Of a stretch of 64,000 nucleotides of DNA, positions 46,103 through 54,223 are shown in pieces. Position 1 is the stretch's first letter, and each line of letters starts with the position of its first letter. The translations under genes were made by a program, and so were the position numbers. The notes beneath the pieces are model-generated. The model ran no database searches. It saw only the letters and a list, made by a program, of their open reading frames with translations, and was not told the origin of the DNA. Location of the stretch: the sequence record PV472050.1, one strand, 5' to 3'.

Positions 46103-47545
46103 ATGAAACCGACTAACATTACCCTCTTAGACCCCCGGACGATTGTTCCGGGTGTCTTTAAACCTATTACGTCTACGGACTCATTTGAAGGGATGACTCA
46201 GAACCTCAATGATGATGGTCTCTTCTCCCTTGACATCTTCGGTAAACTGGGTAGTAAACAACGTGATAACACGGAAGCGTATATCGACGTTAAACTTCCC
46301 ATCTTCAATCCCACTTACCTAAAAGCCCTTATACAGATCAAAAGTCTGTATCATTCAATTTTGAAAGGATCGGAATACGCGGTATGGGATCCCGAACTGA
46401 AGGATTTCATAAAATCGAACATCCTGGAAGGGGAAAAGGGTTTCGCTTTCTTCCTGAAACATTTTGATGAAACCGTCTTCTCCCTGACACCTTCTCATAA
46501 ACGCAAACAACGGGTAGAACTGGCGAACCAATTCCGTAAGACAGCGTTAACGGATAAGGTCCTGGTTATCCCCGCTGGTCTCAGGGATATCCAATTCAAT
46601 CCGGATGGTTCCCACACCGAACCTGAAATCACTGAATTCTACCGCGCCTTAATGTTCCGGGTGAGGGTGATCCTCGGGAATAAGGAAGATGCCCTGAACC
46701 CCCTTTACGATACCGTTCGGTGGGGGGTACAGAATGCTTTCTTGGAATTGGATAATTACCTCTTTGGTTTACTCCAGGGGAAAGGGGGTGTTCTCCAGCG
46801 TCGTATGTCCACCCGGGGGGTTCACAACAGCACCCGGAACGTCATTACCGCCCGTAAAGTCTCCAGGACACGTTTAGACTTCGACGACGGTGTAGGTCCT
46901 AACTCTGCGGACATGGGACTCTATCAAGCCCTGCTGAACTTCCCTTATGTCTGCATCAACGCGTTAACCAACGGCTACCTTTCCAACATCTTCACCCCCA
47001 GCTCTCAAACCGCTAAGCTGGTGAATACCAAGACCCTGGAATACGAATACGCTGAAGTCTCCCCTGAGGTGGTAGAGAAATGGACCACCGCCACCGGGTT
47101 AATGAAACTCTTCAACGGGTTTGCTGATCCCTCCCTACGGAGTAAACCCATTGTCATTGAGTGGAAATACTTAGCCCTCATTTATGATGATGGGACTGAT
47201 GTGTGTGTTCTCCATGACATCAACGATCTCCCTCAAGGGAAAGACCGTAAATGGGTGAAACCTATCACCTACATGGAACTCTTCTACTTGAGTTGCCACA
47301 GTGTCATCGAAGAACAGATTACAGGACAAACCCGGTATCCCATTACGGGGATTGGCTCTATCTTCCCGGCTAAGGTTAACCTACGTACCACCACCAATGC
47401 GAGCCAGCGGGTGATCCGTAATCCGATTGATTGGAGTGTGCGGGAAACCTGTAAACGGTTCCCTAAACGTGAAGCCCACCCCGATTACTTCGATGCCATG
47501 TCCGTAGACCCCTCTAGAGAAGCTTTGCTCGACAGTGACCATGAT
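46103..47545 (+). CDS. rpoC: Virion RNA polymerase beta' (phiKZ gp180 type), exon 1
   Basis: DDGLFS.DIFG, GH/I.L-P-like, VLVIPAGLRD and KGG...R motifs; ends ...DSDHD at the splice site. Confidence 0.88.
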
Positions 47546-49318
47546 TAGATAGTGATGCATGATATAAACTCACTATACAACTCCTATTGTATGCGGAAGT
47601 GTTCGCATTCGACCATAAGGAGTTGTAAAGATGTTAACGTGTTTTGGAAAGAAATACGTGTTGTCTACAACCAACACAGTTTACAATGTCACCGATAAGA
47701 CGGATGTTCCAGTCCATCGGATGGCAGACGGGAATACGTTCTTCATCGCACGGGGCGATGAAAACGAACTGGTTAAGATCAAACTGGGGTTAATGATCCT
47801 CCATGGAGAAGGAAAGTTCCATCTTCCTATCTCTGAATGGGAACAGGTGAAAGTAGGTTTTCTGGATGACGATACAGGAAACTTTGCAGCGGATAACCTT
47901 TACTTGGTCTATCCTGAAGAGGGCATCCCTTACCCTGAACTCTCTGGGTACTACTACATCCCTGGGTTTGAACTCAACGCAATCAACCGAGACGGTGTGG
48001 TATACCGAACACTTAGAAAGAATCTTTACCCACCGTATCTGGGTGGTAACACCGTTCCTAACAGTTTCTACCCCTTTGTTCGACTGGATGTGGTCAGTGG
48101 GGATGAACGCAAGTATGTCCACCGGCTACTGGCGGAGACCTTCGGTAAGCCGCCTAAGGGCTACCCCAAGCTACTGGTCGACCATAATGACGGTAACAAG
48201 ATGAACTTCAAGCTCTTTAACTTGATTTGGGTTACCGCTAAGAACAACACTTTCAAAGCGTACAACAATCAAGAAGCGAGAGCGGACAATAATCCCTTGG
48301 AGGTTTTTGACAGGGAATTAGGTCAAGTCTTTAAGTACGTCAGTCAAAATGAGTTTGCGAGAACCATGGAGGTGGATTCTTGGTGCATTAGTCTGGTACT
48401 CAAACGTCCTCGTTCAGTGTACAAGAACAGGTACGTTCTTCGTCGGAAGGGAGATACACGTGACTTCCAAGAGATCTGGGACTATAAACCCCCTGTGGGT
48501 AAGAAGATCCTTGCCCGGAATGTCTTCACCGGTGAAATCACGGTGTATAATTCATTGGCAGAGGCCTCTAGAGCAACACAGGTAGGGACAACAGGCATCC
48601 TGACGTCCCTGAGTAACACCAACCCGAGATCCGCCTTTAAAGACCTTCAATTCAAGCGGGAGTCTGACGAGACCCCTTGGCCCGATTTGAATGAATACGA
48701 ACTGGAATGCATCCGGCGCAAGATGCACCCTGCTACAGCTGTGTATGAAATGTTTGATTCGGTAACCCAGGAGACGTCGATTGTGTATGGCGTTGATGCA
48801 GTTACCCGAATCACTGGAGCCAATCCCCGTACCGTTATCGTTTGCGCACGAGAAGGTAAGTTGCTCCATTCCCGTTATCGTTTCAAGAAACTTACACGTT
48901 AACGCGTTTATATCCATCACTTAGTCCGGCTAGGCACGAAAGTCCTAGACCGTATTCCTCTGAATTGCTGGGAGTTCACAAAAGTCTGTTGGCTACAACG
49001 TAACTGGAAACAGTAAGCGTGAATGCGACCGAAAGGTAGAAAGAACAACAGACCTGACCTACGCTAACCAATAACGCTAAGGGTCGTAAACAAGGGACAA
49101 TCAGCCGCTAAGACGCTACCGGGTATTAGACCCTATGCGTAAAGTTCAACGACTAAGGGAGTTATGACCCTGTACACCTACCAAGGAAGGGGGTGGAAGT
49201 GGAGGAGACCTAAGGGGGGAATAGACCTATTCCCTACGGTCAAGATATAGTCTGGCCCTGTTTAATAGACAGGCAGGCACCTGAGCGTGCCGGGTCCTAG
49301 TATGGACTGACCACCGCG
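47546..49318 (+). mobile_element. Group I intron (1773 nt) with internal HNH endonuclease ORF
   Basis: Exon ends in U, intron ends in G; P AATTGCTGGGAG 48963, Q AATCAGCCGC 49099, R GTTCAACGACTA 49143, S AAGATATAGTCT 49242; splicing is in frame. Confidence 0.9.
47631..48902 (+). CDS. Intron-encoded HNH homing endonuclease with three NUMOD1/IENR1-like repeats
   Basis: YVHRLLAETF...VDHNDGNKMNFKLFNLIWVTAKNN; three C-terminal repeats of the type F...TGE...Y.S..EA.R. Confidence 0.9.
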   Translation: MLTCFGKKYVLSTTNTVYNVTDKTDVPVHRMADGNTFFIARGDENELVKIKLGLMILHGEGKFHLPISEWEQVKVGFLDDDTGNFAADNLYLVYPEEGIPYPELSGYYYIPGFELNAINRDGVVYRTLRKNLYPPYLGGNTVPNSFYPFVRLDVVSGDERKYVHRLLAETFGKPPKGYPKLLVDHNDGNKMNFKLFNLIWVTAKNNTFKAYNNQEARADNNPLEVFDRELGQVFKYVSQNEFARTMEVDSWCISLVLKRPRSVYKNRYVLRRKGDTRDFQEIWDYKPPVGKKILARNVFTGEITVYNSLAEASRATQVGTTGILTSLSNTNPRSAFKDLQFKRESDETPWPDLNEYELECIRRKMHPATAVYEMFDSVTQETSIVYGVDAVTRITGANPRTVIVCAREGKLLHSRYRFKKLTR

Positions 49319-49501
49319 GGCGATCAATTGTCGAGCCATTCTGTTGTAGCGGAAGACAGCAAACAACAGGCCTACGAACTCTTTGGGAAACGGGAGTATT
49401 ACATCAGTGGTACGGGTCGGTTTTTGTACGATCCGATCAACGAACCGATTCTCTTTATGTTTAAAGCAGCGACGAGCGGCTTAGAGGATATTGAGGTATG
49501 A
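49319..49501 (+). CDS. rpoC: Virion RNAP beta' exon 2 (60 aa, GDQLSSHSVV...EDIEV)
   Basis: Read manually; in frame after the omega-G, completes the DHD/GD motif; TGA overlaps the ATG of the beta gene. Confidence 0.85.
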   Translation, partial: GDQLSSHSVVAEDSKQQAYELFGKREYYISGTGRFLYDPINEPILFMFKAATSGLEDIEV

Positions 49502-52500
49502 GCAATCCAATTACGTATTCCGAGTTCTTTAAGCACTTTGTGCTGCGTAAGAAACAAGACGTTGTAAACCCTAAAGTCCTGGGTATTGGTGAAGTGATCC
49601 TTCCTAAGGGGAGTTTGCTGCACTTCGTACCGAAGACGGTTAATGAAAAGGGACCGGGTAGTAGTGAAGCGTTTATCAGTAACTTCCCTAAAGAGGTCTT
49701 TATTGAGTTTGTAAGGGACGGGTATAAGCCGGTGATGGGGCATGGGCGTACAGTCGCCTATGACTACCCTAAGGCGGTTAAGGCGTACCGGGCGAGTCAC
49801 TACATGTACAGCTGGGTGCGTGAGATCAGCACGGTGTACAACAAAGAGAACGTGCTAGTCGTTAAGAACTACGGGATGATTCCTCAGGGGTTCGTTTACC
49901 GTCCGAGTATTTTCGTGAATTATGAAAAATACTACAACATGATGCACCTGCTCATTGAGAACATCAATGCGGAAGCCGAGAAAGGGGTGCGTCGGCAGTA
50001 TATGCGGATTGACCTGCCGTTGAACCTACCGTCCCTGGTTGAGCTTGAGAAAGACTACGGACGGTTTATCGATGGGTTTAAGGACGGCCATCCTGTCCTG
50101 ATGCGCAATATGCTGGAGAGTACGAAGGCTGAGAACTGCTATTGGCTGTTGGACCTACTGGGGTTCCTGTTTGGCCAGTATTCGTTCAGTTTGTTCGGTA
50201 AACTCACCGACCAGGCGTATAAGGATTTGCATATCCTCTTTACGTCACAAAGTAAAGTCATTGTAGTACAACTGGGGCTGTTGAAGGGTTGGTTAGATGA
50301 AACAAATCCTAAAGACGAGAAAACCTACCCCTCTGCTCGGAAAGAGTTTGAAAGTCTGAAGACATTGACCCGCCATAATGCGGTTAAACGTTTCTATTTG
50401 GCTTTGATGAATCTTTCTCGTGGAGGCGTTCCTGAGAATGTACTCATTAAAGAGGAAACGAAAAATGTCATCCCAATTGCCGGAGAGAAAGGTACCGTTG
50501 ACCAAGTGGCTGCGGGAACGTCACGAGAAGAAGAAGAAGAAACATCCAATCTTCCAGAAACCCGAGACCATACTGGCTCGGGCACGGTTCCCCGTGCTGA
50601 TCGTCCTGCTGGTTCTATCCTTGATGTTTTCAGCCGAAGTGAAGGACCTGGCGAGGCACATGACGAAGAGCAAGACACAGCGGGAGAACGAGGTGCTGAT
50701 TCAAATCTTGAAGAGTGGACATCGCCGGTAGATGATGAACTACTGGAGGTGGAGAAAGTCCAAACCGAGATCAATACCAACAAGAATGTGTTTAAGACGC
50801 CTGAGAGTGGTGTAAAGCGGGCGTTGGAGGAGCGGGCTAAGGAAGGTACGCTGACGGTAGCTGAACATGATTTCTTCATGCGTAAAGCGACCCGTTATCA
50901 GCACATTGAAATGGAGAACGGTCAAACGTTCGAAGAGTTCATTCAGATTAAACCCGAAGAGGTTAAAGACCTGGGTGGAGAGATTGAAGGTGAGTTTCTC
51001 CCCGTACTGGATGAGAGCATGCTGCGGAGTCGTGCCAAATCCCTCAAGATCGAATATCCTCAGAAGTTTTTACACCGGGATATTGGTCGAATGGTGTTGG
51101 GTCTTCAGAACGCTGGCTTTGCGATGAACGACTATCGGCGTGAGAAGGTCGTCAGCGTAGAAGGTAGTTACGAGGTCCACAGCATTCAGTTGCACGAAGT
51201 CAATGGTGATCAGGTCACTGTACATACTCGGTTGCCTACGGTGCTGAAAGACGGCACCTACGTCATTGATGGTGTTAAGCAACACATGCAACTGCAACGT
51301 CGGGAGAAACCTTTCCGGAAGATCAGTCCTCGGGAAGTGGTGCTGTCGAGCTATTACGACCGTAAGCTCATGGTGAGTCGTAGTCCGAAGATGGTGGATA
51401 ACCTTTCTACGTTCATGGTGAAGCAAATCTCCCTCCAGAGTAAGCGGAAAGGGTATACGGTCACTAAAGGCAGTACTTGGGATCGCTCCCTTAAAGCCCC
51501 TCGGATTTACAGCATTCTGGCTCGTCAGTACAAGTACATTACTGTCGACGGGTTGGTATTGGACTTCCGGTTGAAGGATCTCCTGGAACTCCACCCTGAG
51601 TTCAAAGCCTATACCCGCCCTGATCGGTTCTTGATTGGGGTAAAAGACGGATTACCTTTGATCATTGATGATTACGGTAACCTGTACAAAGGGGAAGAGG
51701 AACTCGGTACTGTTGAAGACTTGCTCGGTATTGATGTTCGTAAAGCGCCTTTGGAACACGTGGTGATTAATATCAGCGGGTACTCGTTCCCGTTGGGGGT
51801 GGTTCTGTGCTTCTACTTCGGTATTGACGAACTGCTGCGGGTGATTAAAGCCACGACGCGTTCGGTACCCGTAGGAACCCGCCCTAAATTGACTGAGGAT
51901 GAATACGCGATTCAGTTCAATGACGAATACCTGATCTTTAACCGTCGGGAGAAGCTCACCACGTTGATCTTCGGTGGAATGCCGAAGTTGAACAACATCA
52001 GTAACTTCAGTCGGAGTGATTTGAATAATAACAGTATCTGGAGTGCGTTGATGGGAGACCCTCGGGTTCGTCCATCTCAGTTCCAGGAAATGAAGAACCT
52101 CTTCGATCTCTTTATCGATCCCATTACGAAAGACCTCTTGAAAGAGATGAAGCTGTCTGAAGACTTCCATTACTTGCTGATTGATGCAGCTAAGGCATTG
52201 GAAACGGATTACAGTCGACACGAGGTGGAGATTGAAGAGCAACGCATTGTAGGGTATGAACGCTTCGCAGGTCATCTCTACACGGAATTTGTAAAGTCCA
52301 TTCGTCAATACCGGAATAAAGGGAAAGGGCGTAAACACAAACTGGACTTTAATCCGGATGCGGTTATTATTGCCATTGGCACTGACCGGTCTACGAACTT
52401 GGTGGAGGAAGTGAATCCGGTTCACCAAGTGAAAGACCAAGAGGAAGTGACGTTTGGGGGTACGGGTGGTCGTAGTGAAATCACCATGGTCAAACGTGCG

Positions 52501-52698
52501 CGGACTCAGCTGGAGAGTTACAAAGGGGTCATCAGTGAAGCCAACAAGGACAGTGGTAAAGTGGGGTATGTGACCTACACCACCTCTGATCCGGGTATCG
52601 CTGATTTCCGAGGCAATGTTGATCCCAAGAACAAACGTACTCCTACTGGTGACGGTTCGGTTACCATGAACCTGATGTACGGTGGAACGCATGACGAT
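49498..52698 (+). CDS. rpoB: Virion RNA polymerase beta N-terminal subunit (phiKZ gp178 type), exon 1
   Basis: RpoB-like motifs LP......YVIDG, GGTGGR, GVISEA..DSGKVG, HDD; GAGGT RBS. Confidence 0.88.
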
Positions 52699-53104
52699 GA
52701 GTGTGGAAAACAATAGATCACTCAGTCCAACCAGGGAGTAATCCCTGGTTGCCATTACCTTTAATTGCGGGAACCTACTGAGAGCCTTATCACCAAACCC
52801 GAGCAGGAAACCAACGGGTGGCCAACCATAACGGGTTGGGGACGGAATAACGATAAGGATGGGGAACCCTACGCAGCGAAGCGCCTACGTATTGTCGAGA
52901 GGACAAGATAGGGTGAACGTTCAACGACTACGGATGAAATTTCCGGTAGAGGTGTCAGGATGATACTTCCAAAAGTAAGGTTGCCCTGTATGCTCGAGGT
53001 GGAATAACACTGAGTACAGGGATGAAATATAGTCTCGTCATCTAAGGGAAAACCTTAGAGCGTGGTGCTACGCGCACCGGCGGATAGGAAATCCGTGAAG
53101 TTCG
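52699..53104 (+). mobile_element. Group I intron (406 nt), ORF-less
   Basis: Exon ends GAU, intron ends in G; P AATTGCGGGAA 52763, R GTTCAACGACTAC 52919, S AAATATAGTC 53025 (P7 GACUA/UAGUC); in-frame join HDD/VKRAVF. Confidence 0.9.
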
Positions 53105-54223
53105 GTCAAACGAGCAGTATTCACATCGACTCAGGCCTCTCAAGCAGTGATGGCTAAGAACTACGAGATCGTTACCCTGAGAACGGGTTACGAGAACGTA
53201 CTGGCTCACCGGACCTCCGATCTTTACAGCAAAGTAGCTGCTGAAGATGGTAAGGTTACTAAAGTGGAGAACGATCGCTTACTCGTCGAATACAAGGACG
53301 GAACAACGGACTCGTATCCCTTAGGGTTGGTGATTGGGGAAGCCAGTGGGGAATATCATCCCCACAGCCGTACCACAGATCTGAAGGTCGGAGATACCTT
53401 CCGTAAGGGAGATGTCATCGGTTGGGATGAAAACTGGTTCGGTCGAGACCCCTTCTGCCCAGGGCAAGTCGGGGTTAAGATGGGTAAAATGTGCCAGATC
53501 GTTATGGTGGAAGACCAGGATGTGTACGAGGACTCTATTGCAATTTCGAAAGAATTGGCCATGGAAGCACGTACCCCATTCATTAAACCCAGTCGGTTTG
53601 CCGAGGACGTGTCAAACAACCTGGTAATGCGGGTTAAGGTAGGAGATTACGTCGAACAGGACACGATTTTATGTGATATCGAAGAGCCTCACTTGGTGGA
53701 GGGCGAGGAGCTTCCTGAGCTCGAAGCAGACATCAACAAACTCGGTATCAAACAGATCCGTTCGAAGCATCATGGAAAGATCGTACACATCGATGTTCGG
53801 TACAACTCTCCCTTAGACAAGATGTCTGAGTCGTTCCGTTCGTTCATTGTTCAGAAGGATAAGGAAACGAAACGGAAAGGGTTGGTGGAAGGAACCGGTG
53901 TCGAGAACAATGCCATTTCCACGATGTTCAATCTTAATCGTCCCATGTTAGGTCCAGGTAAGGCATTCATTACGTTCTACATCGAGTCGTTAGACCCGAG
54001 TACCAATGCGGATAAGTATGTCATTGGGAACCAGATGAAAGCCACTGTGGGTCGTATCATGGAAAGACCGCTTAAGACTGCCAGTGGGATTGTAATTGAT
54101 GTGAAGTCGAGCTTTAAAGGGATGTTTAACCGAATGGTGCTCAGTTTGAGGAACAAGCTGGTTGCTAACGAGTATGGTTACCAAATCACTCGCCAAGCCA
54201 TTAAACTCTACAGAGGTAAATAA
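53105..54223 (+). CDS. rpoB: Virion RNAP beta exon 2 (372 aa)
   Basis: VKRAVFTSTQASQAV, TGYE, VYEDSI and ADKY..GNQMK motifs of RpoB; frame is open from 53105. Confidence 0.88.
   Translation, partial: VKRAVFTSTQASQAVMAKNYEIVTLRTGYENVLAHRTSDLYSKVAAEDGKVTKVENDRLLVEYKDGTTDSYPLGLVIGEASGEYHPHSRTTDLKVGDTFRKGDVIGWDENWFGRDPFCPGQVGVKMGKMCQIVMVEDQDVYEDSIAISKELAMEARTPFIKPSRFAEDVSNNLVMRVKVGDYVEQDTILCDIEEPHLVEGEELPELEADINKLGIKQIRSKHHGKIVHIDVRYNSPLDKMSESFRSFIVQKDKETKRKGLVEGTGVENNAISTMFNLNRPMLGPGKAFITFYIESLDPSTNADKYVIGNQMKATVGRIMERPLKTASGIVIDVKSSFKGMFNRMVLSLRNKLVANEYGYQITRQAIKLYRGK

Follow-up and report, generated by a model that had tools for sequence, protein, structure and literature searches.

Why does the gene for a catalytic subunit of a phage RNA polymerase (RNAP) stop inside its own metal-binding motif? 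The question is raised by a 64,000-nt stretch of sequence record PV472050.1 (hereafter, the window), in which the open reading frame (ORF) 46103..47548, the counterpart of gp184 of phage EL, reads ...REALLDSDHD and then ends at a TAG codon (47546-47548), as a first-pass annotation of this DNA had noted. That annotation had placed a group I intron with an HNH endonuclease gene at this point of the gene for the beta′ subunit of the virion RNAP. Our analysis makes it very probable, on sequence evidence, that a self-splicing group I intron, with a gene for a homing HNH nuclease, splits this gene within its Mg-binding D-x-D-G-D motif.

The window belongs to an EL-like Pseudomonas jumbo phage of the genus Elvirus, family Chimalliviridae (taxonomy per the GXNNE2 record). 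The 4-kb stretch around the intron is 100% identical to Pseudomonas phage MIZ-Pa99 and 98.8% identical to phage EL, with a range of 97.8-99% across EL and seven other EL-like phages.

Removal of the intron restores a complete catalytic motif

The interrupted gene consists of the following parts:

46103..47545, + strand: exon 1, virion-RNAP beta′ N-terminal subunit (EL gp184); 481 codons, last base U(-1); assigned by PHROG 2986 and PHIKZ180 homology
47546..49318, + strand: predicted group I intron, subgroup IA, 1773 nt; in-frame TAG at its start, omega-G at its end
49319..49501, + strand: exon 2, beta′ N-terminal subunit; 60 codons, GDQLSS...DIEV, plus TGA; assigned by PHROG 2986 and contiguous homologues

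Both splice-site bases named in the first-pass annotation are in place: the final base of exon 1 (47545) is T, giving the U of the 5′ site, and the final base of the intron (49318) is G, the omega-G. Read in frame from 49319, the coding part of exon 2 (49319..49498) gives GDQLSSHSVVAEDSK...DIEV (GDQLSSHSVV...), and its TGA (49499-49501) overlaps the ATG of the beta gene at 49498. Intron removal thereby restores a continuous frame of 481 + 60 = 541 aa, the protein length and stop-start overlap proposed earlier. Of the 539 profile positions of PHROG 2986, 5-486 match exon 1 (E = 7.6e-193) and 487-538 match exon 2 (E = 1.9e-08), with neither gap nor overlap between them, and this contiguity at 486/487 fixes the junction to the codon. 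A shifted junction is impossible, and no other one yields D-H-D-G-D, because the bases differ on the two sides of each boundary. The exon-intron arrangement at these coordinates is far beyond chance.

The complete D-x-D-G-D motif exists only across the exon junction (DSDHD|GD), the intron lying between the second Asp and the Gly, and neither exon alone carries it. Since the first three bases of the intron form a stop codon, an unspliced message gives just a 481-aa protein without the third Asp and the last 60 residues. That an intact subunit would require splicing, as had been argued, is supported by the Rfam match, the covariation, the U.G pair of P1, the omega-G and the intron-less homologues described below.

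The assignment of the gene to the virion RNAP also holds. Exon 1 is 32% identical to PHIKZ180 over 479 aa (its whole length), and EL and phiKZ have a common gene order, with a tail lysin on the opposite strand, beta′ and beta; together, this identity and the matching order identify EL gp184 as virion-RNAP beta′ by homology. Pfam and NCBIfam gave no match to either exon, PHROGs alone recognising this divergent polymerase. phiKZ Gp180 is a virion-RNAP subunit, with some 10 copies in each virion; it copurifies with Gp178, Gp80 and Gp149 and has been described as bearing a DFDGD metal-binding motif (PMC10612078). By analogy, we infer that the EL beta′ subunit is packaged in the virion.

The intervening sequence is predicted to form a subgroup IA ribozyme

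The predicted RNA elements of the intron are:

47543..47567, + strand: extended P1, 5′ strand; GAU|UA (47543-47547) is P1 proper, with AGUGAUG (47551-57) and GAUAUAA (47561-67) as the extension; RNAcofold
48908..48926, + strand: extended P1, 3′ strand with the internal guide sequence; P1 proper is UA-GUC, and the extension is made up of UUAUAUC and CAUCACU
48930..49308, + strand: ribozyme core; Rfam alignment and covariation on ten introns
Core helices, 5′ part: P2 48930-48; P3 48955-60/49202-07; P4 (P/Q) 48962-73/49097-105; P6 49106-44
Core helices, P7 to P8: P7 (R/S) 49144-55/49242-53; P7.1 49156-71; P7.2 49175-95; P8 49208-40
Core helices, 3′ part: P9 49257-73; P9.1 49276-91; P9.2 49293-308

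The comparison with group I models suggested by the first-pass annotation returned a full-length match of 48908..49272 to Rfam RF00028, scoring 48.4 bits, 1.6 below the curated cut-off of 50, with E values of 1.1e-10 for the region and 3e-09 for the whole window. The P, Q, R and S elements, whose presence had been claimed, lie at 48962-73, 49097-105, 49144-55 and 49242-53.

Covariation was assessed on an alignment of ten introns running from the guide through the 3′ splice site. Standard pairs fill 85.7% of base-pair cells, as against 34-48% when the partners are slid by 1-3 columns, and 47 of the 69 pairs show changes on both sides (shuffled mean, 27.7); none of 500 shuffles reached the observed values. 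The alignment backs P2, P3, P4, P5, P5a, P6, P7, P7.1, P7.2, P8, P9 and P9.1, with the qualification that P7 never varies and is hence uninformative for or against the structure. The P7.1 and P7.2 hairpins, located between P7 and P3′, show compensatory changes at four of four pairs each, and by their presence the intron falls into subgroup IA, to which phage introns usually belong. Conserved in every related intron is an A-GUC-C element just 5′ of P2, and the final intron base is G in every related intron examined.

In the predicted P1, exon bases GAU (47543-45) pair with the guide GUC (48924-26), which puts a U47545.G48924 wobble at the 5′ splice site; the energy of the extended P1 is -14.8 kcal/mol (RNAcofold). 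Co-folding of the 5′ end with the guide element gave one architecture in nine introns, which starts with GAU:GUC and U(-1).G at the splice site. In eight of the nine, one or two bases at the start of the intron continue the pairing, FishSpeaker being the exception with none; next come an internal loop and a P1 extension of 7-14 bp that closes the loop. The extension differs in sequence from intron to intron (AGUGAUG/CAUCACU plus GAUAUAA/UUAUAUC in EL, GCAAAU/AUUUGC in phiKp_32, GAAUUAGU/ACUAAUUC in TSL-2019). Given this architecture, with a guide located 3′ of the ORF, the HNH gene lies within the P1 loop, a loop of 3 nt in the ORF-less phiKp_32 intron. A search for an internal guide sequence in the interval from the 5′ splice site to the HNH gene met only chance matches of 4-5 bp.

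Two further pairings were set aside. An offset P10 pairing (GGCGAU/AUCACU, one mismatch) is possible, yet it is unconserved in phiKp_32 and is not claimed. RNAalifold also proposed an outer helix that pairs the UCC of AGUCC (columns 17-19) with a GGG close to the 3′ end (columns 511-513). Two of its three pairs lack both-side changes (one being invariant), so that covariation says almost nothing about it either way, and it clashes with the role of AGUCC in P1; we give it no role.

Intron-less relatives read through the junction

Uninterrupted beta′ ORFs of 538-541 aa, in which DSDHD|GD is contiguous, are present in Erwinia phage Joad (57% identity) and in eight IMG/VR relatives (68-75% identity). 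All nine read ...DPSRE..L.SDHD|GD.L.S... straight through the junction, the empty alleles of the metagenomic relatives having the sequence GACTCTGACCACGAC|GGCGACCAATTG. The last Asp codon before the site is GAC in all eight IMG/VR empty alleles and GAT in the intron-bearing alleles (EL, phiKp_32 and metagenomic contigs L023-L025) as well as in the empty Joad allele, a split that, at sequence level, agrees with the requirement for U as the last exon base.

In Klebsiella phage phiKp_32 the very site used in EL holds an ORF-less intron of 380 nt; in metagenomic relatives it holds introns whose HNH protein is 52% identical, and other, equally close relatives are empty. Such polymorphism among relatives at similar divergence argues for recent movement of the intron.

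The intron encodes an I-HmuI-like HNH protein behind a ribosome-binding site in a predicted hairpin

Two features occupy the P1 loop:

47576..47624, + strand: hairpin over the Shine-Dalgarno sequence AAGGAG of the HNH gene (47617-47622, in the 3′ arm); minimum free energy (MFE) folding
47631..48902, + strand: HNH endonuclease gene (EL gp185), 423 aa; Pfam HNH_3, PHROG 59 and I-HmuI match

The first-pass annotation had described the product as a 423-aa HNH/NUMOD1 nuclease. The HNH part of this description stands, with Pfam HNH_3 matched at residues 161-206 (E = 1.9e-10) and PHROG 59 at E = 1.5e-48. NUMOD1 stays below threshold in the EL protein itself, which scores 13.1 bits (E = 0.12) against a cut-off of 22.8; among eight gp185 homologues, NUMOD1 is matched in four (best E = 2.2e-5). 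A PDB sequence search with gp185 returned I-HmuI (1U3E) as sole match (E = 9e-4), aligned over the HNH motif. Likewise, when an AlphaFold model of gp185 made with eight homologues (mean predicted local distance difference test score, 82) was compared with known structures by Foldseek, 1U3E was found with E = 6.9e-8, probability 1.00 and 26% identity over 181 columns, and nothing else fell below 0.1. Residues H164, H185, N197 and N206 are invariant among the eight homologues, down to 26% identity, and the model contains three beta-beta-alpha-alpha units C-terminal to the HNH domain (residues 223-257, 293-327 and 371-408). Identity to phiKZ gp179 is 26% (E = 9e-17) and to PhiPA3 gp210 28% (E = 1e-11). 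The N-terminal 100 residues were also considered as a degenerate HNH copy; BLASTP of the two halves found nothing, and the idea was abandoned.

The hairpin over the ribosome-binding site has an MFE of -22.2 kcal/mol (z = -3.2), and none of 200 shuffles folds equally well. Comparable hairpins are predicted before the HNH start in eight of nine ORF-bearing relatives. In seven of the loci (L005, L016, L018, L020, L022, L023 and L026), a hairpin of differing sequence covers the ribosome-binding site within the 60 nt before the HNH start. On these folding predictions, the hairpin probably restrains gp185 translation, and its conservation suggests that gp185 expression is regulated.

A proposed mechanism and its alternatives

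We propose that the ribozyme core (P2-P9.2 with P7.1 and P7.2) would fold, bind guanosine and excise the intron, joining ...GACCAUGAU to GGCGAUCAA... to give the 541-aa subunit. The predicted spliced junction is ...GACCATGAT/GGCGATCAA..., and the predicted tryptic peptide spanning it is EALLDSDHDGDQLSSHSVVAEDSK. gp185, its output probably limited by the buried ribosome-binding site, would act as a homing nickase of the I-HmuI type, in which small, repeated DNA-binding modules of the helix-turn-helix (NUMOD-like) kind come after the HNH active site. Intron-less alleles of the gene in co-infecting relatives would be nicked by it, and repair would then copy the intron in. It is possible that the intron benefits a phage competing with intron-less relatives.

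Several observations weigh against this account. Splicing in EL is read from the sequence; besides the Rfam score falling just under its cut-off, P1 covers only three exon bases and no convincing P10 helix was found, the first bases of exon 2 (GGC) being out of register with those 5′ of the guide. In phiKZ, a long-read transcriptome study found no spliced reads for the homologous introns under its conditions (PMC10914365). As for a use of gp185 as a weapon, all nine sequenced EL-like isolates carry the intron, so that no natural target is known among them, and the corresponding phiKZ and PhiPA3 DNA is too different for an obvious target, both of which weaken that idea. Finally, between the window and GXNNE2 there are 30 synonymous and 2 non-synonymous differences in exon 1 (15:1), against 18 and 19 in the HNH gene (about 1:1). 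By this comparison, constraint on gp185 is relaxed, not absent, and the nuclease may be heading for decay.

The presence of the intron in all nine isolates and the relaxed constraint would fit an intron that splices while its HNH protein is a decaying passenger with neither a homing nor a competitive role, the intron being fixed in the EL lineage and kept solely because an imprecise loss would ruin the catalytic motif. ORF-less versions at the same or neighbouring sites in phiKp_32 and VP4B show that the ORF can be lost. We regard this explanation as possible but rather unlikely: the ORF is intact in all nine EL-like genomes, H185, N197 and N206 have stayed invariant even in distant homologues, the conserved hairpin suggests regulated expression, and the presence of the intron in some but not other similarly diverged phages argues that it has moved recently.

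Explanations without any splicing fare far worse. Jumbo-phage RNAP subunits can be encoded in several pieces (PMC7598289), GenBank annotates gp184 alone, and an in-frame TTG at 49328 could start a second polypeptide of roughly 57 aa, so the gene might be naturally split into this and the 481-aa product, with a free-standing HNH gene between them. Yet the break falls inside the D-x-D-G-D motif, of which an ORF begun at the TTG would omit the G-D, the gap is filled by a complete group I core with covariation, the P1 pairing puts its U.G exactly at the break, and close relatives have a single uninterrupted ORF, all of which makes a natural split highly improbable. An error of assembly or annotation, or a defective allele confined to one isolate, is scarcely credible as the source of the interruption; nothing beyond the missing annotation of exon 2 speaks for it, whereas the same 4-kb arrangement recurs at 97.8-100% identity in nine EL-like phages that come from several countries and were sequenced independently, and is also found in metagenomic contigs. 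A self-splicing intron with a homing nuclease thus remains our preferred explanation.

The beta gene carries a second intron

Immediately downstream, the beta gene is interrupted as well:

49498..52698, + strand: beta exon 1 (EL gp186), ending ...GGTHDD
52699..53104, + strand: second predicted group I intron, ORF-less, 406 nt; Rfam 34.8 bits, E = 3.7e-05
53105..54223, + strand: beta exon 2 (EL gp187 region), 372 codons from VKRAVFTSTQ

This intron belongs to the family of the beta′ intron, with an AGUCC guide element followed by P2. In alignment with phiKZ gp178, gp186 ends at residue 1072 and the following exon begins at residue 1074; by sequence comparison, the second intron sits at the site homologous to phiKZ gp178 D1072, which is that of the PhiPA3 gp210 intron. 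In GXNNE2 (97.9% identical) the beta site is empty, reading GTHDD|VKRAVF, which confirms the junction and means that the second intron is polymorphic within the genus. The predicted spliced beta junction is ...CATGACGAT|GTCAAACGA.... Metagenomic contig L024 has an uninterrupted beta gene of 1447 aa, the second intron being apparently absent there.

Related introns follow each of the three Asp codons of the motif

Introns related to that of EL occur at three positions of the beta′ D-x-D-G-D motif, each following a GAU codon and all with the guide GUC:

After the first Asp: phiKZ (gp179), Vibrio phage 2 TSL-2019 and Goslar (L005, L016, L022)
After the second Asp: EL, phiKp_32 (ORF-less), vB_pir03 and metagenomic L023-25 (window, L004, L021, L023-25)
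After the third Asp: VP4B (ORF-less), FishSpeaker, Raoultella VB_ZK_P1 and metagenomic L026 (L017, L018, L020, L026)

When 13 ribozyme cores are placed on a tree, the site labels do not group together, 6 changes being needed (minimum, 2; mean of shuffled labels, 5.9), and the sole strongly supported clade (98/100) unites phiKp_32 (second Asp) with VB_ZK_P1 (third Asp). Taken at face value, the tree implies that related ribozymes changed site at least once. It is small and has three long branches, and we treat site switching as a lead rather than a result.

An intron of Photobacterium phage PDCC-1 (L015, 4420..6165) looks chimeric. It is like TSL-2019 at the 5′ end and in the ORF (first-Asp site, here preceded by GAC, not GAT) and like VP4B in the core and at the 3′ end (third-Asp site). 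If the apparent exons are joined, the product reads LGGD|QLNS and the YDGD codons are lost, which may point to an assembly problem, to a micro-exon that went unrecognised or to a gene that is defective.

One speculation, which we consider doubtful but worth stating, is that this IA lineage has specialised on the GAU codons of RNAP active-centre Asp residues, and that occupied sites block the nucleases of neighbouring sites, acting as mutual exclusion or immunity markers. Because the guide GUC fits any GAU, close ribozymes could then be found, in different chimalliviruses, after the first, second or third beta′ Asp and after the DD of beta, and could switch between these sites. Occupation of one site would split the recognition sequence of neighbouring nucleases, turning the introns into exclusion markers between co-infecting jumbo phages, and EL would be protected at both its beta′ site and its beta (gp210) site.

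Consequences for annotation and function

The EL record labels gp184, gp186 and gp187 each as 'RNA polymerase beta subunit' and gp185 as 'HNH endonuclease'; the gp185-gp186 interval is without any annotation, and exon 2 of beta′ is thus unlisted. The deposited EL gp184 is accordingly a truncated protein that lacks the complete catalytic motif, and gp186 and gp187 are two exons of one beta gene. Structural and biochemical studies of the EL virion polymerase need the spliced sequences. In the MIZ-Pa99 record, three 'hypothetical protein' coding sequences, 48976..49071 (- strand), 49262..49366 (- strand) and 49383..49484 (+ strand), fall within the ribozyme core or exon 2 and are most likely spurious calls. 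The taxonomy line of the same record, PV472050.1, places MIZ-Pa99 in Pantevenvirales; Straboviridae, its sequence being that of an EL-like Elvirus (Chimalliviridae).

On the sequence evidence, an essential early-transcription enzyme of EL would rely on two ribozymes. More broadly, the catalytic Asp codons of jumbo-phage polymerases appear as a common landing zone for one intron family and hence as a natural system for studying site switching. The idea of the intron as a weapon, developed for PhiPA3 and phiKZ, becomes testable in a second genus, and the polymorphism of the second intron among near-identical Elvirus isolates supplies ready intron-plus/intron-minus pairs.

Comparison with known systems

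Introns in jumbo phages have a history. The abstract of the 2005 EL genome paper is said to link endonucleases of the HNH and LAGLIDADG types with group I introns and inteins. That paper is cited for jumbo-phage introns in a 2026 review, and jumbo-phage RNAP genes have been described as 'frequently disrupted by introns'. For phiKZ, the intron-associated HNH genes gp56, gp72 and gp179 were predicted in the 2002 genome paper, and Ceyssens et al. 2014 are credited with the introns in gp55 and gp180 (both as cited in PMC10914365 and PMC11512511). In the literature searched, we found no description of the exact EL junction, nor of a single GUC guide serving three Asp-codon sites. The EL beta′ intron is an unannotated further case of the intron family known from the same gene in phiKZ and relatives.

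Closest to it is the phiKZ gp179 intron, which interrupts the NADFDGD motif of the orthologous gene, shares the EL ribozyme family, with its AGUCC guide, its GNRA-type loop on P2 and its core, and likewise has its HNH gene in the P1 loop. It differs in lying 6 nt upstream, behind the first Asp and not the second (GAD|FDGD versus DHD|GD), and in size, with 1443 nt versus 1773 nt and an endonuclease of 357 aa versus 423 aa. Goslar, too, has an annotated group I intron ('Intron_gpI', Goslar_00229) and a phiKZ-gp179-like ORF (Goslar_00230) splitting its beta′ gene; unlike that of EL, this intron follows the first Asp (GGD|FDGD) and has a larger, divergent ribozyme.

The precedent invoked in the first-pass annotation, a nuclease in the RNAP gene of a related jumbo phage, proved sound as to the nuclease and different as to the gene. 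PhiPA3 gp210, an HNH nickase in a group I intron, nicks phiKZ gp178 adjoining D1072, and PhiPA3 is favoured in co-infection; its intron lies in beta, not beta′ (PMC11620839). Like that of EL, it is a group I intron with an HNH gene in a virion-RNAP gene of a Pseudomonas jumbo phage, adjoining catalytic Asp codons, and its ribozyme carries the ACAGUCC guide and P2 element of the EL family. Unlike that of EL, it is inserted in beta (gp211/209, the site of phiKZ gp178 D1072). Nicking and competitive advantage have been demonstrated experimentally for PhiPA3 gp210 (Birkholz et al. 2024, Science), whereas EL gp185 is known here from its sequence. The PhiPA3 beta′ gene, gp212, is uninterrupted and reads TADFDGD (L028, 21269..22921, - strand), which makes it a possible natural target of the phiKZ gp179 nuclease, in the reverse of the published gp210 interaction.

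Outside the jumbo phages, I-HmuI of the SPO1 DNA polymerase intron is also an HNH nicking endonuclease encoded by a phage group I intron. At 174 aa it is much shorter than gp185 (423 aa), which has some 100 extra N-terminal residues and three predicted beta-beta-alpha-alpha modules, and its intron differs in host gene and in the position of the ORF. The td, nrdB and sunY introns of T4 share with that of EL their subgroup (IA), their location in conserved enzyme genes and their homing-endonuclease ORFs; they differ from it in encoding GIY-YIG or other endonucleases, in carrying these ORFs in P6 or P9 rather than P1 and in residing in genes of nucleotide metabolism. In these T4 introns, ORF translation is restrained by RNA structure over the ribosome-binding site.

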